Of a stretch of 64,000 nt of DNA, positions 2,142 through 40,186 are shown one piece after another (the stretch's first letter is position 1; the number at the start of each line of letters is the position of its first letter). The position numbers and the translations under genes are program-made. This DNA is from Neoechinorhynchus agilis (taxonomy: Eukaryota > Animalia > Acanthocephala). The notes beneath the pieces are model-generated. The model was not told the origin of the DNA. It did not search any database and saw nothing but the letters and a program-made list of their open reading frames with translations. The stretch lies in the NCBI GenBank assembly GCA_051530055.1, contig CM121343.1, positions 6,666,389 through 6,730,388 of the forward strand, in the 5' to 3' direction.

Positions 2142-2342
2142 ACTTCTGATAGCGAATATATATTTAACATTGCTGATAAAATATGGTGAAGAAAATAAAA
2201 ACTGAGAAATTCGATTTTATTGTGAATTTTCGGCATTAGCGAGATAGTCTGAAGAAGGCCTACGCTAAGGCCGAAAATTCACAATAAAATCGAATTTCTC
2301 AGTTCTTATTTTCTTCACCATATTTTATCAACTTCTGATAGC
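2142..2342 (+). mobile_element. Fold-back element with hammerhead motif and 12-bp TSD (probable non-autonomous Penelope-like derivative)
   Basis: Direct repeat ACTTCTGATAGC at 2142-2153 and 2331-2342; inverted arms 2174-2241 and 2263-2330; CTGAAGA-A-GGCCT-ACGCTA-AGGCC-GAAA at 2249-2276. Confidence 0.8.
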
Positions 2343-2781
2343 TTTACTTGCTATTGGGTACCTTTCACTCTACAATTTCTTTATAAACTCAATTGTTAAT
2401 TAAAGATTGACCAAAGCAATTGTAACATTCAAAAGACCTTCACTTTAGATACTCAATCTTCGTTGCTTCTTCAAATACATTTAGAACTTTGAATTGCCCC
2501 AAAATATACTAGATCCAACGATTTGTGGGATTTTTATTAGGACAAAAGACATTTCCTCACTTTAGCGTAAATTGCATAATTCGTTTGATCTCTCGGGAAT
2601 CGCTTATTATGCTAGCATAATTCTAGCCAAACAGCGATAGCATAACAAGCGAAGATTTCGTTCCATTCCTTCATGTATAAATACTGGTTATTTGTATAGA
2701 TTGAAAAGCCAAAAAAAATCATTGCAAAATAATCGTGCCTCTTTAAACATTCGACATTTTTAATGGAATATCAAACTTATA

Positions 2782-2880
2782 CAAAATATCTCCTCCACAG
2801 TACAACGGGCAATGCTGCCAGCGTGATGGCAGCATTGCCCGGGGAAAAAAAGTTCGATTTTTATATTTTGTTAAAATACA
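2782..2880 (+). mobile_element. 3'-end fragment of CRE-clade non-LTR retrotransposon
   Basis: Translates (one frameshift) as QNISSTVQRGNAASVMAALPG, matching QNISLAVQRGNAASVMA at 33.4-33.6 kb. Confidence 0.65.
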
Positions 2881-3011
2881 ATCAACGCCGTCACCATTAA
2901 TTTAATATTATTTTTTTTAAAGAGACGTCGTGTACTTTTATTATTTCGTGCAATTGATTAAAGTGTAAACCATTTTGGTCACTGTGATAGCTTTATTTAC
3001 AAGCTCATAAA

Positions 3012-3663
<652 letters not shown>

Positions 3664-5023
3664 TGATCCTCTTTTGTAAATCTAAAGCAAGAAAGGAAAC
3701 ATTATATGGACCTTCTGCCGAGGAACGTTAGGTTGTCGGATGCTGATTCGTTGCACCCATGACATTAATAGCCTAATTAATGGCAGAAGCAGATTATGCA
3801 AAATGCGATAAGAATGGCTTACACAAGGAGACAGTAGAATCCTCGGAGAAAATAATGGGCGGCGTCTGATCTTTCACATCGCTGCTACCTTATCGGTTAA
3901 CTGTCAAATGTGCTCGAGAAACAATGGTAAATGGGTGGAACTAGCAGCATTTCAGCCCCGCAAAGCGACAAAGATAGTTAGAAATGCTGAAAGCAACAGA
4001 CAGAGATGAATTTTATTGGGGAAAATGCGAAGTCTTAAGAACCGCTCTCATCACTTGCTTTAAAACTATAATTTTGAGGATTTAAGACGAATATACGTAG
4101 AAATTAGTGTTTAGAATACTATGAAACACAAGCAATTGATTACAAGATTGATAATTGAAAAGGTTATCTATTAGATTTAGTAGAAGGCAAGGTTCTCCGT
4201 CTACTAGTTTACGTGCGTTTTCCTCGCAGTATTTTTGGGAGGGGGGGGCACTGATGCGTTTCCATCATTGTTTGTTGACGCAATTTTAGGTTTTTTGAAC
4301 AAACCATGGTAAAAACACATCCATTTTTGCCTATATCATCTTCTATCATTAAATTATCCTTACTTCACACTTGTGATAATTGATTTGAGATATCTTCTAA
4401 GAATTCATCCACGCCACGTGTTTCCACAACTTCGACTTTGATAACGGCCTATCACGCCCACAGTCACCCAACTCCACCTACTACAAGTTTATCTAATTAT
4501 TCCCAGAACAATAATTGCAACCGACGTTTGGAGAAAACCTCAAGTTATCGTTTGAAAATAATGGGACTCCAGTGAATACTCTTGCGAGGTTAGACGAATC
4601 TCAACAGGGTTGCTAAAGATTATTACTCTTCTTTGTTGTCTGCTATGGACGAATATAAAATTGGGAAAAAGACATTAAGTTGAAATACTCTGATATTTTC
4701 ATATTATTTTAAGTGTGTTCTTTGGTGGTGAGAAAAATAGATATCGATTTTTATATCACACAGAATTGTCGTCGGCCTGAATTTGATTCGAGTTGTTGTT
4801 GTTGATCATTTATTTTAATATTTTGCAACTGTTTACGACGTTTCATTGTTACATCCCAGAAACTAACTTGCGAAACAACCTGATGAAGTCCGACAGACGA
4901 AGTATTGAGAATTAATAAATCAATATCTATTCTTATCATCACCACGATTATTATAAACTCAAAATTATGTTATGGACTGTTTATTTCTAATGACTTAGGC
5001 ATTCTTCAAAAAGATTGATGATC

Positions 5024-5840
5024 AAACTAAAATTGAAAGTACGTTTCTTATTAGATTAAACATTAAACTGAACATAATGATTCGATTTTGGTCGCTTAAT
5101 TTACGTTTTATGATTATTGATTGAACATTGAATTGTTCATGTTTTTATATGGCGGAAAATTAAAAGAATTTATAGATCGTCATATAAAAACATTTGCGAT
5201 TATTGTACAAAAAGTCATCTTTACAACATAAATACGACAAATAATAAATTAAACTAAAATTGAAAGTACGTTTCTTATTAGATTAAATATTAAACTGAAC
5301 ATAATGATTCGATTTTGGTCGCTTAATTTACGTTTTATGATTATTGATTGAACATTGAATTGTTCATGTTTTTATATGGCGGAAAATTAAAAGAATTTAT
5401 AGATCGTCATATAAAAACATTTGCGATTATTGTACAAAAAGTCATCTTTACAACATAAATACGACAAATAATAAATTAAACTAAAATTGAAAGTACGTTT
5501 CTTATTAGATTAAATATTAAACTGAACATAATGATTCGATTTTGGTCGCTTAATTTACGTTTTATGATTATTGATTGAACATTGAATTGTTCATGTTTTT
5601 ATATGGCGGAAAATTAAAAGAATTTATAGATCGTCATATAAAAACATTTGCGATTATTGTACAAAAAGTCATCCTTACAACATAAATACGACAAATAATA
5701 AATTAAACTAAAATTGAAAGTACGTTTCTTATTAGATTAAATATTAAACTGAACATAATGATTCGATTTTGGTCGCTTAATTTACGTTTTATGATTATTG
5801 TACAAAAAGTTATGTGTGCGAGATAAATACGACAAAAAAT
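5024..5840. repeat. Tandem array, 227-bp unit, ~3.5 copies
   Basis: AAACTAAAATTGAAAGT at 5024, 5251, 5478, 5705; internal hairpin ATGTTTTTATATGGCG / CGTCATATAAAAACAT. Confidence 0.95.
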
Positions 5841-6937: not shown

Positions 6938-9039
6938 CTATCTGTATTCAGTGGATTTATTATCACTTTCATCTAGTTTTCCTCCAGTTATCGTTTCTGA
7001 TACTTCTTCAAGAGTTTCCGTTGTAAGCTCTATGTGTTCGCTGCTCATATATTGCAACACCTGATGAAAAATGATATATTTTTTAGACAAATAACGATTA
7101 TACCTTAAATAACTCTCCGACGTCGATTTTATTGTCGCCTTTAACGAGGTTGGCAATCACTGCCCCGCGTAATTCAGATGGTTCCGTGACATTATCAGGC
7201 TTTAAGCGTTCAATTATATCAAGTACGTCGTCCAATTCGACTAAACTTTGCCTATTGAAAAGACAACAGTGAAATCATTTCTTTGTAGAGAATAAACACA
7301 CCTTCTTCTACTAATCGTTGATTCGTTATTCGGTTCCACATTAGTGTCTGCCTTTTCCCATGGCTCAAGCTCGGATGCCTATTTGTCAAAACAAATAACA
7401 ATTGCAAAAATCAAAGTACAAAAACTACCAATATTCCTTTTTGAATGTTTGATCTCTTATTCTGAAGCTCAGAATGAATTCGATTCACATTGGCAAGCAT
7501 TCGGTCAAGCTTTCGAGCTAGTACGTCTTTCAAATGACCGGGTTTCTCATTGATAACTGCCGCATCCTTTTTCTCCTGCGAATCTTCAATATATTCATCA
7601 ATCTCAATCGTTGATAGGTTGATATTCTTCTTTTTAGCCAATGCAAGAATCTCGCGAGCTAGTTGATTAGTAACACTCTCATCTTCACCCACATCGGGAA
7701 TCTGCCTGGGTTGTTTTCCCTCCAAGTCAACTTCAGCTCGTTCACTTGCGATTGCCTTATCTTCTTTTCTAACAGCCATCAATTTCTCTTTGTTAGGTAC
7801 TCGTTCACCGGCAAGTTCGGCTAATTTCCAAGCAGTTGCTTGCTCAACATCCAGTGGTAAACTAGTAATGACCCCTTTCAGGAAATCAGTCTCCACTTCT
7901 TGATCGGCTGGTTTCTCCACTTCAGCCTCTATCGGTTGTTTTTCAATATCGAAAACTGGAAGCGATCTAGGAGCATAAAAGAATGCCCGGGATAATAATA
8001 GAAGCGATATTGGAACTTTTCTATTCAAACTGAAATCCGTCCATTGTTTTAACTGGAAACGAAGTCGGTCATCAGTAAGGCCGAAATATGCCATTCCACG
8101 ATCATGGCAAGCCCTTTGAAGCTCGTTAGTAGTCAAAGTATCGATTCCATCTCGAAGAATCAAACGATCATCTCGTTCAAGACGGTTTATCCGTGAATGA
8201 ATAAGTCCACGCAACATCATATTCGGACCCAGAGTTGGTAGATCGAGAAGTTCACAAAGACAAATTAGGTTTATCCGATTAAGACTATTTAAAGTAAGAT
8301 CGTTCTCGAAAAGACCTGCAAATTTTAAGACTTCTTCATTGGAAGGTTGTTCTTTATCCGGCGAACGGATTCTTTCCATAAAACTGGTGAATTCCATATA
8401 CGTGTCTTTTCCTAAGTTAGAAGCATGATCCAGTAGCACATCCCTCAGAATATTCGCCACTTGATAATCCTTCTTCATCCGCGCTTCCTTTCGACTATCC
8501 GATAAGTTTTGTGCAAAAGTGCTCGGTAGAGCATTTGGAAAGAATTTTAAATATACCGGAAGCAAAAGTTCCATGAATGGGATGATTATGAACACCATAA
8601 ATGGTACCAATCTAATTACATCGTTGATTGTCGTGATCATATGCCGTTGTTCACGTCGACTAAGCCGATGTCCTCGGCCTAGTTTCCATAATAACTTACT
8701 GGCAATCTTTAGTTCAAGGAAAAAAAGACGAAAGCCGTGATAGTAATGCACTAATTCAGTTTTAAAACGAAACCAAAAACTCGGCTTGACTATCTGTGTT
8801 GCACTCTTTTGGTCGGTTGGTTTTAGCTGCTCCGACGGAGGAACCGTCGTTGCCAATGTTCGGCAAGGCGTAATAAAATACGAGTTCAAATAAGGTCGGA
8901 AATTCGATTGAAGGAGCACGCGTTGAGTTGAAGAACGATGAACTGAACAAATGAATCTCGGACTAGAATTGAATACAAACAACCGGAACAAGCTTCGATG
9001 GGACATCGTTGCTTTAAACAGTGAGATCGAGTTCTCCAC
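6938..9039 (-). CDS. LETM1: LETM1 mitochondrial inner-membrane cation/H+ exchanger; exons 9039(or 9006)-7429, 7378-7302, 7251-7104, 7060-6938
   Basis: HYYHGFRLFFLELK, RLVPFMVFIIIPFMELLLP TM segment, LFENDLTL, LTTNELQRACHDRGM, EF-hand-like C-terminus (DNKIDVGELFKVLQY). Three GT..AG introns of 50, 50 and 43 nt keep frame. Confidence 0.95.
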
Positions 9040-9953
9040 ACGATCCTTTAAGAAATCTGGAAGAGCAAGTTAGACTCAATGAAGGATATGAGCCGGAAAA
9101 TCTAAGAACTGTGCCAAAATGGAGCTTCCTGATTTGGGAAATAAATAATATCAAAAGCTTCGATGGGCAATCGTTGCTTTGAACAGTGAGATCGAGTTCT
9201 CCACACGATCTTCTAAGAAATCTGGAAGGCGGGCAGAACTCAATGAAGGATATGAGCCGGAAAATCTAAGAACTGTGAAAAAATGGAGCTTCCTGATTTG
9301 GGAAATAATGAATATCAAAAGCTTCGATGGGCAATCGTTGCTTTCAACAGTGAGATCGAGTTCTGCAAACGATCTTCTAAGAAATCTGGAAGGCGGGCAG
9401 AACTCAATGAAGGATATGAGCCGGCAAATCTAAGAACTGTGCCAAAATGGAGCTTCCTGATTTGGGAAATAAATAATATCAAAAGCTTCGATGGGCAACC
9501 GTTGCTTTGAACAGTGAGATCGAGTTCTCCACACGATCTTCTAAGAAATCTGGAAGGCGGGCAGAACTCAATGAAGGATATGAGCCGGAAAATCTAAGAA
9601 CTGTGCCAAAATGGAGCTTCCTGATTTGGGAAATAAATAATATCAAAAGCTTCGATGGGCAACCGTTGCTTTGAACAGTGAGATCGAGTTCTCCACACGA
9701 TCTTCTAAGAAATCTGGAAGGCGGGCAGAACTCAATGAAGGATATGAGCCGGAAAATCTAAGAACTGTGCCAAAATGGAGCTTCCTGATTTGGGAAATAA
9801 ATAATATCAAAAGCTTCGATGGGCAACCGTTGCTTTGAACAGTGAGATCGAGTTCTCCACACGATCTTCTAAGAAATCTGGAAGGCGGGCAGAACTCAAT
9901 GAAGGATATGAGCCGGAAAATCTAAGAACTGTGCCAAAATGGAGCTTCCTGAT
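8990..9953. repeat. Tandem array, 164-bp unit, ~6 copies, overlapping the LETM1 start
   Basis: AAGCTTCGATGGG at 8990, 9155, 9319, 9483, 9647, 9811. Confidence 0.95.
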
Positions 9954-10534
9954 CTTTGAAGGAATGAATACGCGGGACTAGTACGACAGAGACTCCGCCG
10001 GGGTTTCCCGACGAGTACCCATGCATACAGTCATCGATGACGTGTCATCGTTGCCGTTTCGTTTAAATTTCCGACCTGCATTTGAGTTCGAGTTACAAAT
10101 TTCTCCCAAGCCAGCAATTTTTCGGTTCCGTTGATCGCTTAATTTCCGTGCTGGTTAAGATTGAAACTCATATGATGGAATATTCAGACGTCGAGGGTGA
10201 ACGAGGAGATTAAAGAAAGATGTTCCTTTTCCGCGGGATGAATCCAATCTCACGTTCCCGTGATGCCATGGAATAATTTAATGGTTCGGGGTTATCCGAC
10301 GAAATTTTGAAGTTCTTGGTTCCCAAGACTGGTTTGGAATGCGATAACGGTGCTCCACCGATAACGCAAAAACCTTTCTTTTTTTGAAATCACTAAATTC
10401 GTGGAGATCGCACTTGACAAAACGATTGCACAATAGCCAATGGGAAATCATTGTTTCGTCAAGGAAAGATCGTTTTTGGACTGCACAGAGCTTGGGAAAT
10501 CTCGAAAAGGCAGATTAGAGGATACGTTTGAAAG

Positions 10535-11310
10535 AGAACTAGGAAAAAAGAAGCTTCTCGCATCGTTTTTTTGAACTACGATCAAACGCCAACAAATTTT
10601 GTTCAATAAATCGCATTTGAAGCTTAGAAAACATAAATTAATAAATTAAACTAAAAATCAAATATTTGAAGGATTCGTATTTAGTATATTTTCCTTTTTT
10701 TTATCGGCCTTGAATGCACTCTATGAATTCTCATTTTTCTTATCATCTTAAAAAACGTGAGATGACAAGTTAAACAGAATTTAATCATATCGAGAGAAAA
10801 TCCATCGTTCGGTTAAAAATTATTTTATTATTAGGAAATATTTCGAAAGAGGAAACCTCGCCTTTTTAAATATGTAAGTTTTAAAGAAAACTAAGAAAAA
10901 AGAAGCTTCTCACATCGTTTTTTTGAACTGCGATCAAACGCCAACAAATTTTGTTCAATAAATCGCATTTGAAGCTTAGAAACATAAATTAATAAATTAA
11001 ACTATAAATCCAATATTTGAAGGATTCACATTTAGTATATTTTCCTTTTTTTTAATCGTCCAGAATGCATTCTATGAAATCTCATTTTTTGTTATTATAT
11101 TTAAAAACGTGAGATAAGAAGTTAAACAAAATTTAATCATATCGAGAGAAAATCCATCGTTCGGTTAAAAATCATTTGGTTATTAGGAAATATTTTGCGA
11201 ACTTGCATATTTGAAAATTCGAAGTTTCCTCTTTCGAAACATTTCGCGAATAATAGAATGATTTTTAACCGAGCGATTATATTCACCACAAGTCAAAATA
11301 AACAGAATTT
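10535..11310. repeat. ~352-bp direct duplication ending in a fold-back element with degenerate hammerhead motif
   Basis: Units ~10535-10860 and ~10885-11200; inverted copy at ~11225-11280; TAAACAGAATTT at 10771 and 11299, with TAAACAAAATTT at 11123. Confidence 0.8.
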
Positions 11311-11759
11311 GTATGATCGATGATATTAATAAAAAGCATTTCAACAATACCTAAAATTTTCGTGAAATCAAACAAGTTTCACCTTGATCTTTAATTATGT
11401 AAAGTTTACTATACATTCCAGCAATTTATATGCTGGTGATTGAAAGATGGATCGATACGTGAGTTTGTGAAACTGTCATGAACTGGATTTGAAGATTAAA
11501 GTTAAACATCATTATATTTTCGTCTATTGATTTCTAGTAATGGAACTTATAATCTGCTAAAATAGCATCAATCGTGATTTTTTTTTGAAATTTAATTGGC
11601 ATTATGGCAAGATTTAGCTACCAAACGCTTAATTCTTAGAACGTTCAGATTTATTGCCAATATGAGCTTTGCGGTCCAAAATTTGTCTTCATTAATTGCT
11701 GATTTTACGTTTCGATCACCATAAATGATACAGATTTTGCAATACTTCACTGATCAAAA

Positions 11760-12880
11760 AGGTACTCTCGCCTCATCCGTAATCTAAAAAGGGATTATGT
11801 GTCCTATGGCTTGGCCCGGGAGTTCAGGGACCGTGTATCCGTTCAAATTCCCTTTCATTGAGTTTTTTAACACGCCGCTAGTTTTAAGCTAAAGTTTTGT
11901 TTCATTGTGTTGGACACTGCAATGTGTAAGGTTTCCAAAACAAGACGTCTTTTTTAGGCGTTGATCTCTTTTTATAATTCGGTGTTGAAAAGTCTTTTGC
12001 TCTCTCTCTCTTGATGCCCAGCATCGTTTGTTCCATATAGAATCCTTCATACTGTTCGGAATGCATTCTTTAAAAAAACATCTCTGTTTTACCCTTTCTC
12101 TTGAATGTGTTTCTGAGGTCGATTCCTTTATTATTGTATAGAGGAATTCCAGTCTTCTTCATCGTGATGGAATGGATAAGTTGATTGATCTCATCGTTGA
12201 AGAAATGTACTATTTTGAAGCATACAGACGATTTTTTTGTGCCGATGGTCGTTACTGGCTTTGAGGGATATTCCCTCATTTTCAACTCCTCGACTATCCT
12301 CTCCGTTTCTTCACGTAACTCGAGTAAATGAAATCAGGGAGGCGCTTCGGAAATACGAAGTGGAAGCAAAGATTTCATGCCTCATCGGTTGGTTCGTTCA
12401 CGAAAAAGTGCATTGAGCACTTTGCGTTGAACGTTTAATCAAGACGTCCAAGAACGAAATCTCACCATTATCATTTTCTCTCTATTGACTGTCCACTGTA
12501 TATGTTGATCTTGAATGTTCGATGCTACATTTTGTGAGTCGTTGTTGTGGTTTAAATCAGTCAGAATAAATACATCATCCACATAATACCACCACCGATT
12601 TGCATTCACTATGCAGTTCCAAGAAAGTGGACTCCCAATCCCGCGTGTTTATGCCGACCAAAATCGGAGCAAATGACGAATCCATGGCTAAACTATCTCT
12701 TTGATCGTTAAAAGAACCATCGAATTCATTAGATAACGGAATACCAAGTGACGAGGTCCAAACGTGGTTCGCTGCAATGCTAAGTGAGTAAATCAGCCGA
12801 CAATTCACTCGTTTTGGTCAGGAGGACATTGGTGAAAAGGGCTTTCACATCGGCCTTAAACATTCTGTCTTGCTCGATGT
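11760..12880 (-). mobile_element. Decayed Penelope-like element (RT + GIY-YIG)
   Basis: Minus-strand fragments QRDSLAMDSSFAPIL, YVDDVFI, ISFLDVLIKR and GFYMEQTMLGIK (GIY-YIG second motif); many stops and frameshifts; homologous to 37.4-38.3 kb. Confidence 0.85.
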
Positions 12881-13330
12881 TTAGTTTCCTGATCTAAATC
12901 GCAAACGTGAATCCATCGTCGATGTGCGAGGCGGCAGTTTTTAAATTTAATCTTAAGGTGGAGCGAGCGTTGCGGAAGGACGGAAAACGGCGAAATACCT
13001 CGATTTAACCCATGAGTTTGTTCCTTTTGGGGTTGAGACCTACGGATCTCTTGGCAGTGAGGCTCTTCAACTCCTGAGGGATCTGAAGCGATGCCTTCAG
13101 GTCCGAGGGATCTGAAGCGATGCCTTCAGGTCTGAGGGATCTGAAGCGATGCCTTCAGGTCTGAGGGATCTGAAGCGATGCCTTCAGGTTATAACCGGTA
13201 ATGCAAGGCCAGGATCATTGTCCTGTTGAGAGGCAACACTGCAAGCATTCGGGCGACAATTGAGGACGAGGACGGCTAGGCATTTTTTGCCGGATACAGT
13301 TTTCCTCCAAGATTTTGATAAGTTCAATGT
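12880..13330 (+). mobile_element. CRE-clade retrotransposon 3' (RLE) remnant with an internal 29-bp tandem repeat x4 (13074-13189)
   Basis: RKTAKYLDLTHEFVPFGVETYGSLGSEALQLLRDLKRCLQ; repeat unit CTGAGGGATCTGAAGCGATGCCTTCAGGT. Confidence 0.8.
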
Positions 13331-15644: not shown

Positions 15645-16323
15645 TAAAATCCATAAACGGAAAAAAAGTCAATAAATTAAATGACGATTTACCGTGTGGA
15701 GTTGTGCGCTTAAATAGTGAAATCACGTAACCAAAGTCATCGGATTTCGAAATCAATGAGCGCCATGTTCATCCGAAACTCCTTTTAAAGTAAAATCACT
15801 TGCTCCAATCTTGTTTTTCTCTTCTACTTTTCTCACAATCGATACAAAGTATCTTTACGCCCATTCATTTTATTTCTATTGCTGGATAAAATCATAGCCG
15901 TCAACTATTAGTTCAAATTAATTTTAATTGGTGTTAGAATTTTTGAATAATATTTGGTTCGATTCTACTTCGTGTTCTTAATGTCTTGTTTGTCCCACAT
16001 TTGAGATAGATCGCAGTTGAAACATGGAATCTTGTAGACACGACCAGAAATACCATTCTTTGGCCGAAGTGCTGTTTGGAGAGTCCTGCCCTTCTTGTTA
16101 TGTCAATCTTTTTGATCACAGCTTCCATTTTTTAGCGACAAACGAACAATTTCGAAAAAGAAGGATTGCCGAGCACCAAAGAGCGATTCGTGCGCGGAGT
16201 GGACGATAGAGGCCATAATGATACAAAAAAACGGATACGCTTGTGGGCAACAAAGCGGATTACACACTCAATCTGCGGATCCCATCGGATAAACGAAATT
16301 GAGTGCTTCTTGAGTGCATTTCA

Positions 16324-16394
16324 GATAGACCGAAGAAGGCCTACGCGAAACCCGAAAATTATCAAATAAATCAATTATTTGATAATTCGCTATC
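16324..16394 (+). ncRNA. Degenerate type-I hammerhead ribozyme motif with full helix III
   Basis: GATAG-A-CCGAAGA-A-GGCCT..CCC-GAAA-ATTATCAAA..TTTGATAAT-T-C-GCTATC; helices I and III pair, the core (U4>C) and stem II are damaged; same family as 2249-2285. Confidence 0.6.
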
Positions 16395-16419
16395 AAATTT
16401 TTTAAGGTTTTTCAACTCG

Positions 16420-26367: not shown

Positions 26368-26665
26368 GAACGTTGAAGATTTTCTATGCGATTGGAATTG
26401 TAACGCTAACTATTGGAAATATTTATTGGTCGAACCGATAGTGTAATCTTAGTACCACTAAAACATTTAGAGCATTTGGCTCATGGCGACAGTTTTTACT
26501 CCGCTGTATTTCAGAATGATATTCTCTAAAACTTTTAGATAAATCATTCGAAAAAACATGTTAAATCAGTCAGCCCAAATGCATTATTTGATCCTACTGT
26601 GCTATCTCCATATCCGAACGATATTTCAGTTTCGCTATATTTCTGAACTCATCAACCATAAATCT

Positions 26666-28788
26666 TTATTTCATTTTCTTGTGTGTTTCCATCTCGACAA
26701 GTTTCCTTTTCAGTTCTGTACTTTTTCCTCCCATGAATTGACCCAAAGATCCATCACTTTTTATAACTCTATGACAAGGAATTATAATCGGACACGGGTT
26801 CATGCGCATGCAACGTCCAACGAATCTGGCACAACGTCCATTTCCGAAACACTTTTCGCTGATTTGACGGTAAGAAACGGTGTCGCCATACTTTATATGC
26901 CGCTTTGGATCTTCAAAATTTTTAATATTTAAGTAGTAATCAACGTTGATAGTTTAGACAACAAAAATAAAGCGTTAGCAGGTGCATTCTTAAAAAACAA
27001 GAAAATATAAAATTTAATTTTTTGTTGGTCTGGAAAAATATGAATCAGAAATTCGAAATTATTGAATTGGAATTATTAGTACGATCTATTAACTAATGTC
27101 ATTTATCATTGTTCTCAGGGTAAATTTGATTGTATGTTGGCGAATCCAGTCCCCAGTGCTATCCATACTCATTTATTTGAGAAATATTTCACAAGGTTTT
27201 CCTTGCCTCTTCAGTCGCTACTGATTGTAAATTTTAAATGTGTGAATTGGTGTCTTTATTAATTGAGAAATATTTCACAAGGTTTTCCTTGCCTCTTCAG
27301 TCGCGGTTGCTTCTAAGTTTTAAATGTGTGGGTTGGTGTCTTTATTTATTTGAGAAATATTTCACAAGGTTTTCTTTGCCGCTTCAGTCGCGGTTGCTTC
27401 TAAGTTTTTAATGCGTGGGTTGGTGTCTTTATTTATTTGAGAAATATTTCACAAGGTTTTCGTTGCCTCTTCAGTCGCCGTTGCTTCTAAGTTTTAAATG
27501 TGTGGGTTGGTGTCTTTATTTATTTGAGAAATATTTCACAAGGTTTTCTTTGCCGCTTCAGTCGCGGTTGCTTCTAATTTTTTAATGCGTGGGTTGGTGT
27601 CTTTATTTATTTGAGAAATATTTCACAAGGTTTTCGTTGCCTCTTCAGTCGCCGTTGCTTCTAAGTTTTAAATGTGTGGGTTGGTGTCTTTATTTATTTG
27701 AGAAATATTTCACAAGGTTTTCTTTGCCGCTTCAGTCGCGGTTGCTTCTAAGTTTTTAATGCGTGGGTTGGTGTCTTTATTTATTTGAGAAATATTTCAC
27801 AAGGTTTTCGTTGCCTCTTCAGTCGCCGTTGCTTCTAAGTTTTAAATGTGTGGGTTGGTGTCTTTATTTATTTGAGAAATATTTCACAAGGTTTTCTTTG
27901 CCGCTTCAGTCGCGGTTGCTTCTAAGTTTTTAATGCGTGGGTTGGTGTCTTTATTTATTTGAGAAATATTTCAAAAGGTTTTCCTTGCCTCTTCAGTCGC
28001 TATTGTTAAAGTGTTTTATTGACATTTAAGTGCGAATAAAACACTAACAATAGCGACTGAAGAGGGAGAGAAAACCTTGCAAAATTTTTCTCAAATAAAT
28101 AAATGAATATCGATAACACCGGGAGCAGGATTCGCCAACGTACTATTAACTAATGTTTTGACTTGTGGTGAATATATTCGATCGGTTATAAATCATTTTA
28201 TTCGTCTGAAATATTTCGAAAGAAGAAACCTCGCTTTATCAATCATTGTTTGCAAGTTTGTTCAATTATGGGAGTATCTTCACCACAAGTAAAAAATTAA
28301 CATCCCGATGGATTTTCTTGAGATTAACTACTGTTTAGCGTTATCTCCAATGATTAATTTATTTCGTAATTAACTAATATTTTAAACGAATACGATACGG
28401 GTTTTTTAAGAATTTAAAATGTAAAAAATCAATTTAAAAATAAACAAATACGTGATGGAATAATTTAATATTTTTCACACACTTAAAGAACCAAAATTTC
28501 AAAGCGTACATTCGAAGCGAGAAACTTCAAAACTCGAATCATTGTTTCTGTTAATTTAAATGATTCCCAACAAATGAGTTCCGATGAATTGTCAAGAGCA
28601 ACTCCTGAGAAAAAATTTTCAAAGCATTGGATAAAATTGTCGCTTGTTTGAGTTTCATTGAAGTTCATACTTTTGTCCTCGAGTTTTATTATCTCGATCT
28701 CATGCAATCCTTTCGGGCAGAATGTATATTTTAGATGACATATTGGAGCCACATAAAAACCATTGCAAACTATGGCTTGGCACTTCAT
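26666..28788 (-). CDS. MGMT: O6-methylguanine-DNA methyltransferase, 2 exons (28788-28510; ~26902 or 26890 to 26666)
   Basis: Exon 1 APICHLKYTFCPKGLHEIEII resembles MGMT SPLGKLELSGCEQGLHEIKLL. Exon 2 reads IKYGDTVSYRQIS..ARFVGRCMRMNPCPIIIPCHRVIKSDGSLGQFMGG, with the active-site PCHRV. GTACGC donor at 28509; exact acceptor uncertain. Confidence 0.9.
27086..28156 (-). mobile_element. Fold-back element with 14-bp TSD enclosing an 87-bp x10 hammerhead-bearing array (MGMT intron)
   Basis: CTATTAACTAATGT at 27086 and 28143; GAAATATTT at 27181, 27267, 27354 ... 27963; minus strand CTGAAGA-G-GCAAGG-AAAA-CCTTGT-GAAA-TATT; inverted terminal copy at ~28040-28142. Confidence 0.85.
28145..28336. mobile_element. 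Second small inverted-repeat element at the same target site
   Basis: TTTTGACTTGTGGTGAAT / CTTCACCACAAGTAAAAA arms; flanks ATTAACTAATGTTT and ATTAACTACTGTTT; related to the 10.8-11.3 kb family. Confidence 0.65.
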
Positions 28789-29471: not shown

Positions 29472-29664
29472 TACTTTAAAAGTATATTTTATGTAAATTT
29501 ATTAAATCGACATTTCGGCTCAATCCAGAGCCTTTATCAAGATTGTAAAGCTTACTTGAATTTTCCTCTGCTAACAATCTTGATAAAGGCTCTGGATTGA
29601 GCCGAAATTTCGATATAATAAATTTACATAATTTTTGTCGCCATTACACAACTACTTTAAAAGT
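29472..29664. mobile_element. Fold-back element with hammerhead motif and 12-bp TSD
   Basis: TACTTTAAAAGT at 29472 and 29653; 58-bp arms 29489-29546 and 29574-29631; AATC-TTGATAA-A-GGCTC-TGGATT-GAGCC-GAAA-TT-TC-GAT. Confidence 0.8.
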
Positions 29665-30200
29665 TACATACATCAGGAGTCTTCTAAGGAAGCAAATAGC
29701 TCAATATACTTCTAGATTTTGGTCTAAAAAATGCGCAGAGTCCATCGTTCCTAGTTTGTTGCATGATTGTCGATCGCTCGAGACAAAACTGCCCTGTTCG
29801 AAATAAACGCCGGCGGTTTATTGATCGAATGCGTTTTCGGAGAAGTCACGCTCGTGGATCGCCTAAAAGTCAATATCATTGAACCATCCACTGCATCCGA
29901 AGTCTTCGACTTCCATAAAATAGGACTAAATAAGGATGCGGAACCAAAGTATGGCAAAAATATAATTGCAGTATCCTTTCAATGAAAATATAAACTGACA
30001 TTTTGCCAAAACGTCTATGGCAAAATCAATATTGCGATCGTGGAGGAAACTCACATTCCGTGTTGAAAAAAAAGAAAAAATAAATTCTATTTCAAGATCA
30101 TTAAATATTTACACGAAAATTGAGTCGAATGAAATTAAAGTATCAAACTTAAATACATTTGAAACGCCGATTAAACTCACCCGCCGCGTTTCTGTAGCCG

Positions 30201-30557
30201 ACCTGTAACCATAGCAACTACATTCGTTTGAAAATCAATCAACGGAGAGACCAAAGTCAATCGAACGATTAAATCGATGAGTCTTGTTTGCTATTTGCAG
30301 AATGCCGATTCAAAGATGCTACAAAAGTTCAGGACAAAGGTGAACGTAAAGGAGCATTCAAAGTTTCCATTTCATCTTCACGGTTTGTCAAATGAATCAG
30401 GAGTTTCAGACTAGCGATCAAAACTCACAATGAATGTAACGTAGACATTTAAGATAAAAAAAATTTACCATTTAACCAAATACACCAAAGTTACAATCAC
30501 GATTCGTCAGCTTTAAACCTTGCTCAAATTTCCAAGATTCTAAGAACGTTGATTCCA
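30201..30557 (+). repeat. Dispersed repeat, copy B (internally deleted relative to 25714-26367)
   Basis: Direct sequence match, with a junction at ~30385. Confidence 0.9.
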
Positions 30558-30899
30558 AAACGCTAATCTTTTCCAAATTGAGAAGGAAAACATGTCAAAA
30601 TTCCAGTGGGCAAGGTTAATCGACGTGAATGTGGGCATTCGATTGACAAATTCATGCTGACGTCATTGTTACGTCATCAAAAGATTATTGCGTAAATACA
30701 CGGAAGAATCATTGTGCTTTGGATACGTTTTCTCAAGTTTATTTTGATTATCGTAGTTGAGGGAAAAAGATGCTTTCTTTTGGTAGTTTTGCAAGTACGC
30801 ATTTATATTTCATCTGCTATCAATGACAAACCTAGAGGAAATGTCGGAGTAATCCGACGGGGTCGCAAAACTACTAAAAGAAAGTATATTTTGTTTTAT

Positions 30900-31100: not shown

Positions 31101-31173
31101 TTATTTTCAGCTAAGTCGGTGGAGCATGGGGCTCTTAATTCCAGGGTCGTGGGTTCGAGCTCCACGCCGGGCG
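31101..31173 (+). pseudogene. tRNA-Lys(CTT) pseudogene lacking the 5' acceptor strand
   Basis: D arm (GCTA AGTCGGTG GAGC), anticodon loop CTCTTAA (CTT at 31134-31136), T arm GTGGG TTCGAGC TCCAC, 3' acceptor GCCGGGC-G, then a T7 terminator; the expected GCCCGGC is replaced by TTATTTT. Confidence 0.85.
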
Positions 31174-31589: not shown

Positions 31590-31720
31590 TTTCCCGGAAG
31601 AGCCAAATGAATTCGAGGAAGGACAAAAGCTGGAATTTGGCGGGAGGTGGTGAGTGTGCGTCAAACAGATTGTTTGAATTGTTAAAAATATATTATGTTT
31701 TTCAAAAAAAAATTGAAACA
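31590..31720 (+). mobile_element. CRE-clade 3'-end fragment
   Basis: GAGGAAGGACAAAAGCTGrAATTTGGCGGGAGGTGGTGAG..CAAACAGATTGTTTGAATTGTT is shared in inverted orientation with 33345-33440. Confidence 0.75.
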
Positions 31721-33344: not shown

Positions 33345-33601
33345 GTGCATGGAATAAAACACAATATATTTTTTTTAACAATTCAAACAATCTGTTTGAA
33401 GCAAACTCACCACCTCCCGCCAAATTTCAGCTTTTGTCCTTCCTCGACCGTCGCCATCACGCTGGCAGCATTGCCTCGTTGTACTGCCAGCGAGATATTT
33501 TGTCGAAGGAATACGCCTGCTCTTGATTCTCCGGTTGCCTCTCTCAATTTCTTCGAGAGATCCTGGAGCAGAGAGAGTGCCGAGCTGCCGAGCGCTCCCA
33601 T
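33345..33601 (-). mobile_element. CRE-clade 3'-end fragment (RLE C-terminus + 3' UTR)
   Basis: GALGSSALSLLQDLSKKLREATGESRAGVFLRQNISLAVQRGNAASVMA. Confidence 0.85.
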
Positions 33602-33809
33602 TTATTTTGGTTCTTTAGAAAATTTTTCTAATGAGCTGCTGATCCGATTAACCGGATTAAACTGTATCTAAAAAATTCGAAGATCTTTTATGTCCATTAT
33701 ATTTTTTCTTATGAAATACTAATTAATTTGTCAGCCTCGGACACTTGGATGGGCTATTGCAATAATAAGAAAAAGAAAATCTTCGAGCTTTCGACATCTT
33801 ACGGCTTCT

Positions 33810-34570
33810 TCAGGAATCTACAAAGGCGAGTGGAGATGTGAAGTGAGTGTTAATGTAGCGATATCGAAACGGAAGGTTCGTGTTGCCTATTGAGCAGTTC
33901 TGATGTCCAGACCGCCCGGATAATTCCACCAGGTCCTTTAATGTTTTGCCAATAAGCGAAACGAACTTTCCGCTTCGATGTCGCTTCTTTAACGCACACT
34001 TCATATCTACACGTGCCAATGTAGATTCCTGAGGAATCCGTAAGACGACGAAAGCTTGAAAATAAAGATTATTCAAAAACATTTTGTAAAGAATCTAATT
34101 TATCTTTTAGTTGAGATTTTCGCGGAAAGCGTTGTTAAACTGTAAGATCATTAGTTTGATGATATTCATGGTTGCACCTTCAGTCAGCATCTTTCACGAA
34201 CTTTCCAATGGCTCCGCGGCTTTTTTATGTCCTAAATCTATATCATCCCAATATAATGGTGTTAGTTCGATCAGAAAATTCCACATATACGAATAAATTT
34301 TTAAATATTCCTCTTCAGAAATACTGTCGTTTTTCATCCATAAATTCATGATCTTTTTGAACTCTGCTTTGCGCCTCTTAGTTTATTGTTAATTTGTGAT
34401 TAATTGAAGATTTGTATACTTCAACGTTTAATCTACCGATTTGCATTGTCCACTTTATCCCAGCGATAAACTAACGGACGCAATCGTACAATGTGACACC
34501 ACATCGGCAACCTTAATAACCAATATTTGAGACACACTTTGGTACTCGCTGAATCCGGATCTTAAGTAGG
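33810..34570 (-). CDS. Possible lineage-specific spliced gene or pseudogene
   Basis: Several open protein-like stretches (RRKAEFKKIMNLWMKNDSISEEEYLKIY..; VVLRIPQESTLARVDMK..), but I could not build a frame-consistent model. Confidence 0.22.
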
Positions 34571-35658: not shown

Positions 35659-36042
35659 TTTTTATTGATGTGAATTATTTTAGTACTTTCGCCGGTCGAA
35701 TTTTATGTTTTTAAATCGGAGAAGTGATATGACCACTTGGAGTTCGTACATCTCTCCGGATCTACGGATACCTCCCGAGGAGGCGGGACTCATCAGTGAG
35801 TTTCTTCTCTTCATCGAGGTATTTCATCCCCGATCGTGGATTCGAACCCTGAAACAGGGATTCACGACACGAGTCCACCTCTACACAACTACGAAATGTA
35901 CAAACTCAGCTGACGAAATCGGTTTGCTGAACCGCATGTTTTTTATCATTTGTTACATTGTCAGCTGATTTTCTCGACCGCTTTTTAATTTTTTTATTGA
36001 TGTGAATTATTTTAGTACTTTCGCCGGTCGAATTTTATGTTT
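35659..36042 (-). mobile_element. ~280-bp SINE-like insertion with tRNA-like head, flanked by 52-bp direct repeats
   Basis: Direct repeats 35659-35710 and 35991-36042; B-box GGTTCGAATCC (minus, 35838-35848); 42-nt core identical to 20634-20675. Confidence 0.55.
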
Positions 36043-37269
36043 ATGGCAAACCGTTGAATTCGAATTGTTTTCGCTATTTACAGCATACTGAAGTGAATCT
36101 AAGTAAAACTGATGTAGAGCCTTTTCCTACTTACCGTGATGGACTGCTTTAAATAGGAAAACGCATTTTCAGTCTGTTTGAAGGATTAGAGTATTACATT
36201 TTGAATGTTAGTGCCCGTCACGAACAAGCACTTGTTTTCGGATACAACTCAAGACCGAGGATTGTGCTTTGGTTTAAAGGTGAAATAACAACACTGTGAA
36301 CCGTGAAATGAAAATGTTAATGTAAACTGCTAATAAAAATGATCGCACCAGGTTAAAATCAATGTATTTAGGCACGATTCCTTGGGTCGAAATCAACGGA
36401 AATGTTTCTGTCGGTATGTGAGGAGGTACCGGAGAATATGATTGGAATTATTGCTTAGCTCTAGTTTGTTCCCGACCAGGTTCGAAACGTCTTTAGGAAA
36501 TGTTTCTGTTTAATGTGTTATAAGGATGTCTTCGCAGGCGTTGGCTTTACTCTGTCCATCATAAAATCGATTTCTCACTGATAAATGGCTCGTCAGCGGT
36601 CCTAAAGTATTTGGAGCAGCATTGTAAAACATTAAACTGTAGAACTTAAAAAAAGAACCAAATTTTAAAGTTTTATTTATATCAGTGTTTTAGATCATTC
36701 CTTACTCGGCTTTTTCCTTTATGCACACATCCAACCGATATCTTACATCAGCGGAAATGATTGAATCAGTTAGACTCTCAAAAACATACGGTTATGAGCT
36801 TTTACGAATCGTTCCGAATCCTAAGGAACTCACTGCTGTATCATTGGAATTAATATCCAAGTGACATGATAAAAGAAGATTTACCTTTTTAGTCGAACAT
36901 TCGTCGATGCCCGCCTAACCTTGTTCTTTACAGTGTATTAATCCACTGGAACTGCCTTAGTTTAGAAAGTAATTTAAATGATACACTGCAGAATGTGCAA
37001 CTGATTGAAACGACTGCTATTTTTATATCTTGATTGCTTGAAAATTCGTGAATAATGTTTACTAAAAAAATCCAAATCAATCTACACGGTGTTTTTTTCA
37101 AATTTGATTTGATGATATAATAAAAAAGATACTGTCACGTAGCGCTTATAATGATTGGATATTCTGTAGGTTTTCCTCAGCGTCATCTGTTCAATTTTGA
37201 ATTGCAACTAGTCTTGGTTTTAATTTAAGGAGTAGCATAAACGATCCTAACAAAGACTATTAATTACTA

Positions 37270-38270
37270 CACTTTCGGTGAGAATAATCCCGGTCATTAC
37301 ATATTTTATTCGAAATATTTCGCGAGGTATCCTCGCCTTTTCAGTCATCTAAAAAAAAGTTTTCCACATTACGATTTTTGCTCGAGTGCGCGGGATCGCC
37401 AAACCCGAAGTTCAGGGACGTTTTTTTGTTTTTCCATTGATTTTTATCACGTCGCTGGCTGGAAGTTTCAAGCTAAAATTAGCTTTATTTCCCTCCATTG
37501 TGTTTAACGCAGGCGTCCATTTAAGATTTTTTTCTTTTTCCAGGAAGTAGGTGCCATTAAAATCAGCGCGATGTTTAAAAGTCTCTTGATAATTTGAGAT
37601 TGCCGTAGAATGCTCAAATCGAATGTAAGCTTGCTTGTGTTGCGAGACCCTCTTCTTAATGCCCTGCATCGTTTGTCCGATGTAATGAGTCGGCTCAGTT
37701 TTACTCTTCTTCTTGAATGTGCATCTGAGGGCGATTCTTTATTGTTATAGAGACGAGTTCCAGCCTTCTTACTCATAATGGAGTAGATCATTTGATTTGT
37801 TTCATCATCATCAATGAAGTTCACTTTTTCGAAACATATAAGCTCTGTGGGCGATTTTTGGTTGTGGTTGTTGTGTAAATGGTACTTCCTGCTTTTGATT
37901 CCGCGGTCTATAATCCATTTGGGATATCCCCTCATTTTTAGCTCCTGGACTATCTTCTCCCTTTCTATACTCCACGCCAATCGAGTGGATGCGATAAGAG
38001 AGGCTCATCGGAATTAGGACATGACAGCCGAGATTTTATACCTCATCGGTTGGTGACTTGACCAATGTGGTGGTCCCCATGGTAGGTTCGCCTTAGAACG
38101 CTTGACAAGGACGTCCAGGAAAGAGACCTCACCGTCGATGCCCTCTTCATTGACTGTCCACTGCATGTGTGGATCTTTACTGTTAAGTTCACCATTTAGA
38201 GAATCTCTGTTGTGGTTTGAATCAGTCAGAATGAATGCATCGTCTAGTTCACCTTGTTCAGATTATTGAT
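37270..38270 (-). mobile_element. Decayed Penelope-like element (RT C-terminus + GIY-YIG) with a 3' hammerhead motif
   Basis: DDAFILTD, VSFLDVLVKR, RGYPKWII, HYIGQTMQGIKKRVSQHK; hammerhead motif at 37311-37348. Confidence 0.88.
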
Positions 38271-39837
38271 AGTAGGTGAATTCATCATCTTTTTAATCTG
38301 TAGTGATACGATAACGTATTGGAGCAATCAAATCTGTCGAGATATTACATAAAGAAATTCGACACAATTACAAGGATAAAAAAATTAGTCCAGCTAAAAA
38401 AATCTTACAACTTTTATAAACACGTACAGGATTGTGCCGAAATATCGGAATCAGCCATATAGAAACAATGTTGGAAGCGCCTCCGAAGTATGTGAGTTAG
38501 CCGAGAGGTTCCCAAAGACATGCCGTAAGGCCATGAGTGTATGTGATTTAAGATAAATAAATCAAAACAGTATTTTATCTTGGTTGAAGAGGATATGGAA
38601 TTACATTCGCCTAAATTGCAAATCATAACGGCAAGTTCAACTGACTGATTTTTTTTGGAGTTTTAAACAATTCCATGTTGTCAGATTGAACGATTAAAGA
38701 TACAATATTCAAGTCATATTTATAGTCTTTTTAAGCTACGTCTGTAGCGTGTATCTATTCAAATTAGTCTCAATTAAGTACGCGTATAATTAATATAATT
38801 CTTCAATAATAGCTTAGCCCTTGTTTGGGGATGTAAACGTTATTGTGTTTATGATAAATTAACTTCCGAGAAATTGTTCTTCATGGAATTTCTACACTCG
38901 CTTATTTAAAAATATTCGACAATCAGAGATTAACGTTTAAAAATGTCAATTGTCGCCTTTTTTTAGATCAAAAATTGAAGTCAGAATTCATCCATTTTTT
39001 GGCATGTGAATTCATAAATCATAGCAGTCATTTTAATGCTTAAAGCAATTTTAGTCTTTTCGTCCAGTAGCGGAATACGCGCCTGATTGGAAAAATCTAG
39101 GAAAAGAATATCCAATCTCATCCGAATGTTCAAGAAATTAGTCTTAATTTGGCACAAAATAGTTTTAAAATGAGCAAATGTGAGTGTGTAACACTTTACG
39201 AAGTCAGCAAAAAAAATTCCGTTTAAGCAGCTTAGTGCAAAAGTTCGTAATCGTTACTAATACATATTCTGACCTTGTCCACAAATGATAAGATTAAATT
39301 TCTTAATCTAAATTCAAATGTACTCTCTTTAGATTCAAGTTTCACCCTCCATTTCATATCCATTATTTAAATTCTGGATCCTTGTTGTAGTCTTGAATAT
39401 TCATGCGTAATTTTATCATCGTAATAATGATCGCTGCGTATTACTGTTATGCAGGTTTATCGTCTTTTTTGCTTTAGTCACTTTAGCAAATACCCCATTG
39501 TTCAACAATCAATACCATTTGAAGCAAATTTATGTAAATGATAAATGGACACATATATTCCCGAACGTTGCATTTCATCTCTACTATGACAATAAGATTC
39601 TAGCTTTAGATTAATATGCGATCGAATTTAAATTTACAAAATGATGCAAATCGACCCATCACAAGTGTGGTCCTTTCTATATAAGGCACTCCAACAAAAC
39701 TGATTCGCAAAACAAGATCTTAGTTCTGTGCAAGACGATTATTGTGAAGCAACTCAAACTGACTGAACTTTTATTGCAGTCCAAAAAACGATATTTTTCT
39801 ACTTTAATGTTCTCACACCGTGCTATTCGCTCAAAAC

Positions 39838-40186
39838 ATTTAGTACTGATATTATGGAAAGCCTCTTTTCCCAACACCCTCATGTTTATTCCAGATTTAT
39901 TATCGAACGGAAAATGGGTGTTTTATTTATTTCTTACTTCAAATTTTCGACGTCTTCGTCAGGAAGCTTTTCTTCGGTTGTCTGAAAAGGAATCAGAGGA
40001 GGGCAACGCTGTCCGTCAGCTCATCCCTCTTATTGAGCATCCCCTCTATAAGAGGGATGAGCTGATTCCTTTTCAGACAACCGAAGAAAAGCTTCCTGAC
40101 GAAGACGCAAGGCGTCGAAAATTTGAAGCAATAAACAAATAAAACACCCATTTTCCGTTCGATAATAAATCTGGATTTAGTACTGA
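39838..40186. mobile_element. Long fold-back element with 12-bp TSD
   Basis: ATTTAGTACTGA at 39838 and 40175; arms 39890-40033 and 40048-40175; 14-nt loop; 40-nt one-sided tail. Confidence 0.85.
40091..40129 (+). ncRNA. Minimal type-I hammerhead ribozyme with intact core
   Basis: GCTTC-CTGACGA-A-GACGC-AAG-GCGTC-GAAA-AT-T-T-GAAGC: 5-bp helix I, 5-bp helix II, palindromic AATT helix III, predicted cut after 40124. Confidence 0.75.

Follow-up and report, generated by a model that had tools for sequence, protein, structure and literature searches.

Fold-back insertions with minimal hammerhead motifs in the acanthocephalan Neoechinorhynchus agilis: very probable miniature products of Penelope-like element retrotransposition

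The window studied here is a 64,000-nucleotide stretch of the genome of Neoechinorhynchus agilis (Acanthocephala; assembly GCA_051530055.1, contig CM121343.1, positions 6,666,389 to 6,730,388), in which short fold-back insertions bearing hammerhead-ribozyme motifs lie among decayed Penelope-like element (PLE) open reading frames (ORFs). The product of a POU ORF (42206-43375) matches a protein of N. agilis at 100% identity. Two PLE ORFs, PLE-A and PLE-B, emerged from six-frame translation and scans for motifs; both were confirmed by tblastn with PLE proteins of N. agilis, as decayed reverse transcriptase (RT)/GIY-YIG copies at 12434-12606 and 37391-38253. PLE-A is followed by a decayed hammerhead remnant at ~11790-11750. 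PLE-B carries a hammerhead ~60 nt past its stop codon (37308-37350, CTGAAAA-g-GCGAGG-ata-CCTCGC-GAAA-ta-U-U), and its 3' terminus lies at ~37265, ~50 nt beyond the hammerhead. A sequence-only reading of the window had proposed five fold-back insertions of one architecture (E1 to E5 below) and had listed a GCGAGG/CCTCGC helix among their motifs; the intact pair belongs to this minus-strand 3' end of PLE-B and not to E2. In addition to the window, we examined 108 kb of the same assembly in five loci (L001-L005; 172 kb in all). These were found by protein search, the stitched ORF of PLE-B giving one N. agilis match and that protein giving four more.

Four of the five proposed insertions, E1, E3, E4 and E5, do share one architecture (Table 1). 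Each is bounded by an exact target-site duplication (TSD) of 12-14 bp, just where the direct repeats had been placed, and between the TSDs lie inverted arms of 68 nt at 97% (E1), 53-69 nt at 80-86% (E3), 58 nt at 97% (E4), and 67 nt at 94% plus 46 nt at 100% (E5). The unpaired one-sided tail, earlier put at about 20-40 nt, measures 20 nt in E1, 32 nt in E3 and 40 nt in E5, on the left in all three, and 21 nt in E4, on the right; in each element it is the 3' extension, in the hammerhead sense, of a single copy. The hammerhead-sense strands of both arms are directed outward in every element, so that two copies have their 3' ends on the outside and their 5' truncation points, which vary, on the inside. 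The central 'loop' is additional 5' sequence of the longer copy. Fixed outer and variable inner ends characterize not only E1, E3, E4 and E5, but also two further elements of the window (I1 and D), a mini-element nested in locus L003 and a full-size copy in L003, all described below. The second arm measures ~10 nt in the L003-nested element, ~20 nt in D, 60-155 nt in E1, E4, E5 and E3, and 725 bp in the full-size L003 copy.

Within this common plan, E3 and E5 have features of their own. The minus-sense arm of E3 holds ~9.7 tandem 87-bp hammerhead units organized in a 174-bp higher-order repeat, and the hammerhead of its plus-sense arm (28051-28094) is decayed. E5 folds into a nearly complete hairpin whose loop is 14 nt and whose junction contains an internal palindrome; the plus-sense hammerhead is intact (40090-40130, GCTTC-CTGACGA-a-GACGC-aag-GCGTC-GAAA-at-U-U-GAAGC), and the minus-sense one (39935-39968) is without the 7-nt tip of helix II. 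Searches by tblastn with N. agilis PLE proteins found no coding similarity in E1, E4, E5 or I1.

The fifth proposed insertion, E2 (~11123-11310), does not belong with the others. Self-comparison and alignment resolve it as the head-to-head junction, at ~11200, between a 352-bp tandem and an inverted copy ending in TTCACCACAAGTCAAAA. The hammerhead in each 352-bp unit is decayed, of the type with a U3-A8 core pair, and has its sense on the minus strand; there is no clean TSD, and an imperfect ~21-bp direct repeat (11124-11145 and 11301-11321) was rejected as too weak to serve as one.

Table 1. Positions of the fold-back insertions, other hammerhead-bearing units and PLE ORFs in the window (position 1 is the first nucleotide of the window).
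Feature	Position	Strand	Details
E1 TSD ACTTCTGATAGC	2142-2153 and 2331-2342		exact, 12 bp
E1 mini fold-back	2142-2342		minus-sense copy 2174-2241, truncated within helix II; tail 2154-2173 extends its 3' end
E1 plus-sense copy	2242-2330	plus	89 nt; intact hammerhead 2243-2286 (CTGAAGA-a-GGCCT/AGGCC-GAAA-at-U-C)
E3 TSD CTATTAACTAATGT	27086-27099 and 28143-28156		exact, 14 bp
E3 fold-back	27086-28156		tail 27100-27131; minus-sense arm 27132-28015; plus-sense arm 28038-28142
E4 TSD TACTTTAAAAGT	29472-29483 and 29653-29664		exact, 12 bp
E4 mini fold-back	29472-29664		minus-sense copy 29484-29546; plus-sense copy 29574-29631; tail 29632-29652
E4 hammerheads, U3-A8, both arms	29503-29546; 29574-29617	minus; plus	TTGATAA-a-GGCTC/GAGCC-GAAA
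E5 TSD ATTTAGTACTGA	39838-39849 and 40175-40186		exact, 12 bp
E5 fold-back	39838-40186		tail 39850-39889; minus-sense copy starts 39890; plus-sense copy ends 40174
E2 complex	10523-11312	minus	352-bp tandem 10523-11226 + inverted copy 11200-11312
Element D, E2/PLE-B family	28157-28322	minus	hammerhead 28204-28248 (TTGATAA-a-GCGAGG...)
I1, older fold-back, absent from the sequence-only reading	33779-34063		arms 114 nt, 81% complementary
E1-family solo copy, decayed	16323-16415	plus	found by covariance model; no TSD found
Solo minimal-hammerhead remnant	20431-20471	plus	GTGAAAA-c-GGAGT-aaa-ACTCC-GAAA-ta-U-C; 29.5 bits (covariance model)
89-bp tandem array, ~9.7 units	632-1510	plus	motif in every unit (632-1495)
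PLE-A, decayed Penelope-like ORF	~11870-13000	minus	FKADVKALFTN, GSPLS, YVDD (~12585), GIY-YIG remnant; stop ~11868
PLE-B, decayed Penelope-like RT/GIY-YIG ORF	37265-38253	minus	YIGQT...RVSQHK of C-terminal GIY-YIG; stop ~37410

The hammerhead motif was evaluated on both strands of the window (128 kb) with a strict descriptor: CTGANGA or TTGANAA, 0-1 extra nucleotides, a helix II of at least 4 bp, a loop of 3-12 nt and then GAAA. All nine matches fall within E1, E3 (five tandem units), E4 (both arms) and E5. In 200 dinucleotide shuffles the mean was 0.70 matches, falling to 0.025 once the downstream NN-U-H and helix I were also demanded, as against four independent loci observed. Because shuffling breaks up hairpins, a second control kept the real sequence and permuted the letters of the core instead; among the 5040 cores the true one ranks first, with three loci against a mean of 0.066, and the runner-up cores are overlapping spellings of the same true-core sites. 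The register put forward by the sequence-only reading is thus real and stands well above shuffled controls.

The fine structure of the motif is constant in respects that the descriptor does not demand: positions 15.2 and 16.2 are complementary, 16.1 is U, and H17 is C or U. An extra nucleotide after A9 is present in all nine strict matches although 0 or 1 was allowed, and the closing pair of helix II (10.1-11.1) is G-C in E1, E4 and E5 and G-U in E3. A U3-A8 core occurs in E4, in D and in L002; the TTGATAA of E4, earlier taken for a remnant, is the covariant core that Schistosoma PLEs are reported to have. In E1 and E3, as in published PLE motifs, helix I is short and imperfect, and a relaxed descriptor with at least three contiguous helix I pairs recovers E4 and E5 only.

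The compensatory changes claimed earlier for helices I and II are borne out by an alignment of 12 distinct motifs from the window and the other N. agilis loci, from which we also built a covariance model. In this alignment 84% of cells are paired, as against 53.5% in shuffles (0 of 500 reach the observed value) and ~35% when the partners are slid, and the covariation score is 0.79 versus 0.22 in shuffles. Helix II is 95% paired, with four of its five pairs changed on both sides, a figure qualified by the use of helix II pairing in selecting the motifs. In helix I the first three pairs are formed in 9-10 of the 12 motifs, with exchanges among CG, AU and UA; the 15.2/16.2 positions are complementary in all 12 (UA 6, AU 3, GC 2, UG 1), as are A15.1 and U16.1, and C3-G8 and U3-A8 cores stand in a ratio of 7:3. 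The motifs fall outside the canonical type I hammerheads (Rfam Hammerhead_1 and relatives), with their helix III and loops 1 and 2. Judged by their sequence, the motifs of the fold-backs are PLE-type minimal hammerheads and putative ribozymes.

Comparison with the ORF-bearing PLE copies ties the fold-backs to a particular kind of mobile DNA. The arms of E3, hammerhead and tail included, are 84-89% identical to the sequence directly 3' of the PLE ORFs in L001, L002, L003 and L005. In four insertions whose flanks are unrelated, the 32-nt E3 tail terminates at identical bases, indicating that it was copied from the element and is not filler. The family of E2 and D matches the 3' end of PLE-B (the 37265-38253 copy) and also L002:11506, which holds an intact hammerhead of that family (TTGATAA-g-GCGAGG-ttt-CCTCGC-GAAA). 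Covariance-model matches in L001-L005 cluster directly after PLE ORFs or at their inverted partners, the motif lying directly after PLE ORFs in five other loci; this is the proximity to Penelope-like ORFs that the sequence-only reading had suggested looking for. Its broader proposal, of PLE-type hammerheads in elements mobilized through RNA by the PLE machinery, is supported by the two RT/GIY-YIG ORFs in the window and by the match of the E3 and E2/D termini to ORF-bearing copies.

L003 supplies a full-size counterpart of the fold-backs. Its inverted arms of 725 bp are 99.3% identical and include endonuclease-coding sequence, its 12-bp TSD (AATTGATTTTAT and AATAGATTTTAT) matches at 11 of 12 positions, and its tail is present on the right side only. 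Nested in that tail is a 107-bp hammerhead mini-element with flanks ATTCAAATTAAC and AATCAAATTCAC, and three other copies of the tail carry the mini-element's site once and uninterrupted, that is, as a paralogous empty site. Orthologous empty sites were sought by way of the neighbouring POU gene; its nearest relatives outside N. agilis share the conserved domain only, and no syntenic sequence was found in the collections. For this genome the anatomy is demonstrated, as are the motif statistics, the paralogous empty site and the homology to PLE copies that bear ORFs. Further unrelated minimal-hammerhead families occur at L003:11242-11348, L003:13702-13743 and L005:13319 (CTGAAGA-a-GATCCG/TGGATC, TTGAGAA-g-GAGGC/GCTTT and CTGAAGA-a-GGCGT/GCGCC), adding to the diversity within this one genome.

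Other members of these families are present in the window. Element D has terminal inverted repeats of 17-18 nt (TTTTGACTTGTGGTGAA / TTCACCACAAGTAAAA), hence its very short second arm, and E3 is inserted right at its end. The PLE endonuclease has been reported to recognize the PLE tail sequence, with which the unvarying 12-14 bp TSDs, the position of E3 and that of the mini-element in the L003 tail all agree. I1 retains hammerhead remnants in both arms (33779-33819 minus, 34023-34063 plus), with AGCU at 15.1-16.1, and its TSD is no longer recognizable; nor was a convincing TSD found for D, the 89-bp array or the E2 complex. The unit of the 89-bp array contains a minimal-hammerhead-like motif (CTGAAAA/CTGAAGA-g-AGAAC-tcag-GTTCC-GAAA/AAAA-ta-U-U), and the terminal sequence of the array, CTCACCGAAGACC, resembles the 3' ends of PLE-B and D, just as the PLE-B terminus resembles that of the E2/D family. 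In the window the covariance model also recovers the left arm of E5, D, both arms of I1, the two solo remnants at 16323-16415 and 20431-20471, and units of the 89-bp satellite. A 14.8-bit match at 21110-21152, inside a 232-bp tandem, was treated as chance. The two solo remnants lie on the flanks of a GC-rich block (16450-20300, up to 48% GC) with frameshifted ORFs for an RT of the non-LTR (non-long terminal repeat; LINE, long interspersed element) type at 18171-18950 and 18748-19680 and a YADD motif at ~16540; the block is 87% identical to L001:804-2715.

On this evidence the fold-backs are very probably miniature insertions made in N. agilis by PLE reverse transcriptase together with the GIY-YIG endonuclease. 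In each insertion the 3'-terminal module of a PLE-family RNA would be present twice, head to head; this module would comprise the 5' strand of helix I, the minimal hammerhead and ~25-60 nt of 3' sequence, sometimes with 20-40 nt more. PLE insertions are known to be 5'-truncated, often with an adjacent inverted truncated copy and often with a 30-40 bp tail at one end only, and the purified PLE protein of a lizard cleaves and extends both target strands, reverse transcription starting at two internal sites that delimit the tail. From that work we infer the order of the biochemical steps. The endonuclease would first cut both target strands ~12-14 bp apart; reverse transcription would then begin at one of two alternative start sites on each strand, the more distal start giving a tail to that copy alone; both complementary DNAs (cDNAs) would halt or switch early, leaving both copies 5'-truncated and joined in the middle; and repair of the staggered cut would create the 12-14 bp TSD. 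The arms would differ in sequence by descending from different PLE lineages; rapid divergence of the termini, with the hammerhead architecture retained, is known for PLEs. In the tandem arrays, the 87-, 89- and 352-bp units would be this module repeated head to tail, as in PLE pseudo-LTRs and non-LTR retrozymes.

Several observations weigh against this attribution and have to be set beside it. First, the Rfam hammerhead models give no match to the motifs at the gathering threshold or at E<=10, a silence that is expected of motifs without helix III. Second, several cores carry mutations (CTGAAAA in the 89-bp array and PLE-B, CTGAAGC in every second E3 unit or so). Activity of the N. agilis motifs is a prediction, and the PLE minimal hammerheads described before are poor cleavers in vitro. 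Third, the 172 kb examined yielded no ORF-bearing parent for E1, E4, E5 or I1, and BLAST of these four against the five N. agilis loci (108 kb) found no further copies. Finally, two observations concern 5' boundaries: the homology of E3 to autonomous copies starts only ~7 nt before the hammerhead, upstream of which E3 has its own spacer and 87-bp units, implying that E3 is not a simple truncation of an ORF-bearing element; and the two independent E1-family copies, E1 itself and the one at 16323-16415, both begin 7 nt before the core, a coincidence that random truncation does not predict.

These last observations lend substance to the strongest alternative, which is that the insertions are dedicated non-autonomous mini-elements: a defined RNA of ~90-110 nt, with its own masters or tandem sources, copied in trans by the PLE machinery. 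This corresponds to the sequence-only reading taken in its strong form. Such an RNA would consist of a short leader, the minimal hammerhead and the 3' recognition end, and fold-back, solo and tandem forms would be alternative products of its insertion, much as in LINE/SINE (short interspersed element) pairs or as proposed for retrozymes. We regard this as a serious contender, if somewhat short of an even chance. The longer copies are alike in size (89 nt in E1, ~106 nt in D, ~97 nt in the L003-nested element, 87 and 89 bp in the array units), and what E3 shares with the ORF-bearing PLE is limited to hammerhead, 3' end and tail. The lack of coding similarity in E1, E4, E5 and I1 points the same way, and in the literature PLE terminal repeats suffice for mobilization in trans and hammerhead-bearing tandem repeats have been proposed as non-autonomous PLE derivatives. 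On the other hand, each family is represented here by only one or two copies; the E5 arms reach ~85-155 nt upstream of the hammerhead, and L003 extends the continuum to at least 725 bp, as random 5' truncation predicts; and the 174-bp higher-order repeat of the E3 array suggests amplification at the DNA level after insertion.

We are therefore undecided whether E1, E4, E5 and I1 represent dedicated non-autonomous families or dead-on-arrival truncations. As a tentative proposal, to which we give a little less weight than to the general idea, N. agilis may carry very small dedicated parasites of PLEs, built on a ~90-nt module in which a ~7-20 nt leader precedes the minimal hammerhead and the 3' recognition end, copied in trans and deposited as solo copies, fold-backs or 87-89 bp arrays. 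If dedicated modules of this kind exist, they would be the smallest hammerhead retroelements or retrozyme-like units described, well under 150-450 bp, and hammerhead plus 3' end would be the minimal cis-requirement for PLE retrotransposition.

A second alternative concerns the route and not the machinery. Instead of two priming events there could be a single one followed by snap-back, in which the RT copies back along a first cDNA that has folded over, or along the nascent strand after a template switch. The near-complete hairpin of E5, with its small loop and junction palindrome, is what such a process would leave, and self-priming was inferred from palindromes at inverted PLE junctions by Arkhipova et al. 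(2013). As the general route it nevertheless seems unlikely. The arms usually end at different 5' points, one arm of E1 stopping inside helix II and those of D and the L003-nested element after ~20 and ~10 nt. A tail on one arm only is what separate starts at each of the two known initiation sites would give, and purified PLE protein extends both strands. The arms of E3, moreover, are only 80-86% alike despite a perfect 14-bp TSD, which weakly suggests two templates. Unequal arms and one-sided tails thus favour two priming events, with snap-back possible for near-perfect hairpins such as E5.

Transposase-moved elements, that is, miniature inverted-repeat transposable elements (MITEs) or Foldback-type DNA elements in which the hammerhead-like motif is incidental, would also be short, non-coding and AT-rich, with long inverted repeats and TSDs, and the insertions resemble them in all of these respects. 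We consider this origin very improbable. The ends are asymmetric owing to the one-sided tail, no terminal inverted-repeat sequence is common to the families, inner ends vary where outer ends are fixed, and the motif statistics exclude a motif present by chance. To our knowledge, TSDs of 12-14 bp are longer than those of any cut-and-paste superfamily. The symmetric, family-shared terminal inverted repeats and superfamily-typical TSD by which MITE and Foldback elements are recognized were accordingly not found in these insertions, and what contradicts this origin most directly is the homology of the arms to the 3' ends of RT/GIY-YIG ORFs, the full-size copy in L003, and the conserved tail with its empty site. 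That the hammerhead-like strings are mere chance in AT-rich hairpins, as the silence of Rfam, the shortness of the core and the 47 occurrences of CTGANGA in the window might suggest, is refuted by the shuffles, by the rank of the true core among permuted ones, by covariation in both helices and at the C3-G8 pair, and by the position of the same motif directly after PLE ORFs in five other loci.

Apart from the elements discussed so far, the window is strikingly dense in tandem repeats. A 6.3-kb satellite of 167-bp units (87-93% identity) at 47104-53361 has a very strong GC skew of +0.28 to +0.37 and no hammerhead by the covariance model, and a 2.6-kb AT-rich satellite (24% GC) of 84-bp units at 55771-58421 gives chance-level matches of ~11 bits to the hammerhead model only, which we disregarded. 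Further arrays lie at 5021-5800 (227 bp), 8990-9970 (164 bp), 23207-23981 (~103 bp) and 13065-13189 (~29 bp), the 164-bp array starting at the 5' end of a LETM1-like ORF (7411-9039, minus strand). Young repeats include a 232-bp tandem duplication at 20684-21134 (100% identity), a 141-bp direct repeat at 24820-24960 and 25308-25448 (99% identity, 488 bp apart), and an inverted match of 42-48 bp at 20628-20675 and 35784-35831 (96-100%, 15 kb apart). A second homeodomain-like coding segment, with a weak POU-class match (~30% identity), lies on the minus strand at 3180-3458, ~1 kb from E1.

Two other repeats recall the fold-backs in outline. A 76-nt inverted repeat, 96% complementary, at 31613-31688 and 33372-33447 encloses 1.68 kb; it has no hammerhead motif and may be another type of element or an inverted duplication, and a tRNA-like match nearby (31109-31165, 27.1 bits) falls below the Rfam threshold of 29. 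The segments 25713-26372 and 30200-30562 are duplicates of ~97-98% identity, the first containing an extra 296 bp (25899-26193) whose boundaries are neither canonical intron ends nor a TSD; with no hammerhead, inverted repeat or TSD, the extra segment was rejected as a fold-back element.

These findings have consequences both for annotation and for the biology of PLEs. PLE hairpins are easily mislabelled as MITEs or as microRNA-like hairpins: sub-threshold Rfam matches to microRNA precursors on the fold-backs (2203-2301, 27985-28068 and 29525-29595; MIR1509, MIR1120 and mir-4850), the top two being plant families, are hairpin artefacts. The mini-insertions also isolate the smallest piece of a PLE that is still inserted (the hammerhead, the 3' end and sometimes the tail), which helps to define what the RT and endonuclease recognize.

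Twin priming and partner elements are familiar from other retrotransposons. In LINE-1 twin priming both target strands prime, giving inverted 5'-truncated segments within one TSD, and in SINE/LINE pairs the non-autonomous partner shares only the 3' recognition end with the autonomous element. The N. agilis insertions are alike in that both strands would prime and that partners may share the 3' end alone. They differ in having a GIY-YIG and not an APE endonuclease, no poly(A), two internal start sites that would yield the tail, and a ribozyme motif within the module.

Animal non-LTR retrozymes, whose descent from PLE termini has recently been argued, offer a second comparison. They form head-to-tail, low-GC arrays of hammerhead units related to PLE termini, as do the 87-, 89- and 352-bp arrays of the window. 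However, published retrozymes have units of ~150-450 bp with canonical type I hammerheads that make loop-loop contacts, and are expressed as circular RNAs, whereas in two of the present arrays the unit is only 87-89 bp long and its hammerhead minimal, and the core is mutated in many units. None of the three arrays, with hammerheads that are minimal and in part mutated, combines tandem units of ~150-450 bp with a canonical type I hammerhead. If expressed, the 87-89 bp arrays would be unusually small retrozyme-like units.

The hammerheads themselves are closest to the PLE minimal hammerheads described by Cervera and de la Pena (2014), which include a U3-A8 covariant and occur as opposite-strand pairs 100-700 bp apart. 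Shared features are the type I organization without helix III, the unpaired nucleotide between A9 and 10.1, the G10.1-C11.1 pair, a helix II of 5-6 bp and a helix I of 3-5 bp, the palindromic 15.2/16.2 positions that would permit dimers, U16.1, a C or U at H17, the U3-A8 variant, high sequence diversity within one genome, and the opposite-strand pairing at the same spacing. The difference lies in the host, here an acanthocephalan, the U3-A8 variant having been described for the Cercyon elements of Schistosoma mansoni. PLE minimal hammerheads, U3-A8 core included, are hereby documented in an acanthocephalan.

As a whole, the insertions correspond most closely to canonical endonuclease-containing PLEs with a C-terminal GIY-YIG (Penelope/Poseidon, Neptune and Nematis/Perere-type). 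The likeness extends to the 5' truncation, the inverted copy, the one-end tail, the TSD and the terminal-repeat hammerhead, and in the same N. agilis genome this hammerhead and tail also follow RT/GIY-YIG ORFs. In contrast to canonical PLEs, the copies here are cut to ~60-155 nt, leaving the terminal module alone; their TSDs are uniformly 12-14 bp as against the 8-10 bp quoted for Adineta vaga, with tails of 20-40 nt. The suggestion of an undescribed system, with which the sequence-only reading closed, does not survive this comparison: the published hallmarks of PLE insertions include 5'-truncated copies in inverted orientation, a 30-40 bp tail confined to one end, TSDs and a terminal-repeat hammerhead, the opposite-strand hammerhead pairs were reported in 2014, and hammerhead-bearing non-autonomous derivatives of PLE termini had already been proposed. 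A pattern that looks new from sequence alone can be a textbook signature, in this case a PLE insertion in miniature. The window adds a new host to a kind of mobile DNA that was already known.

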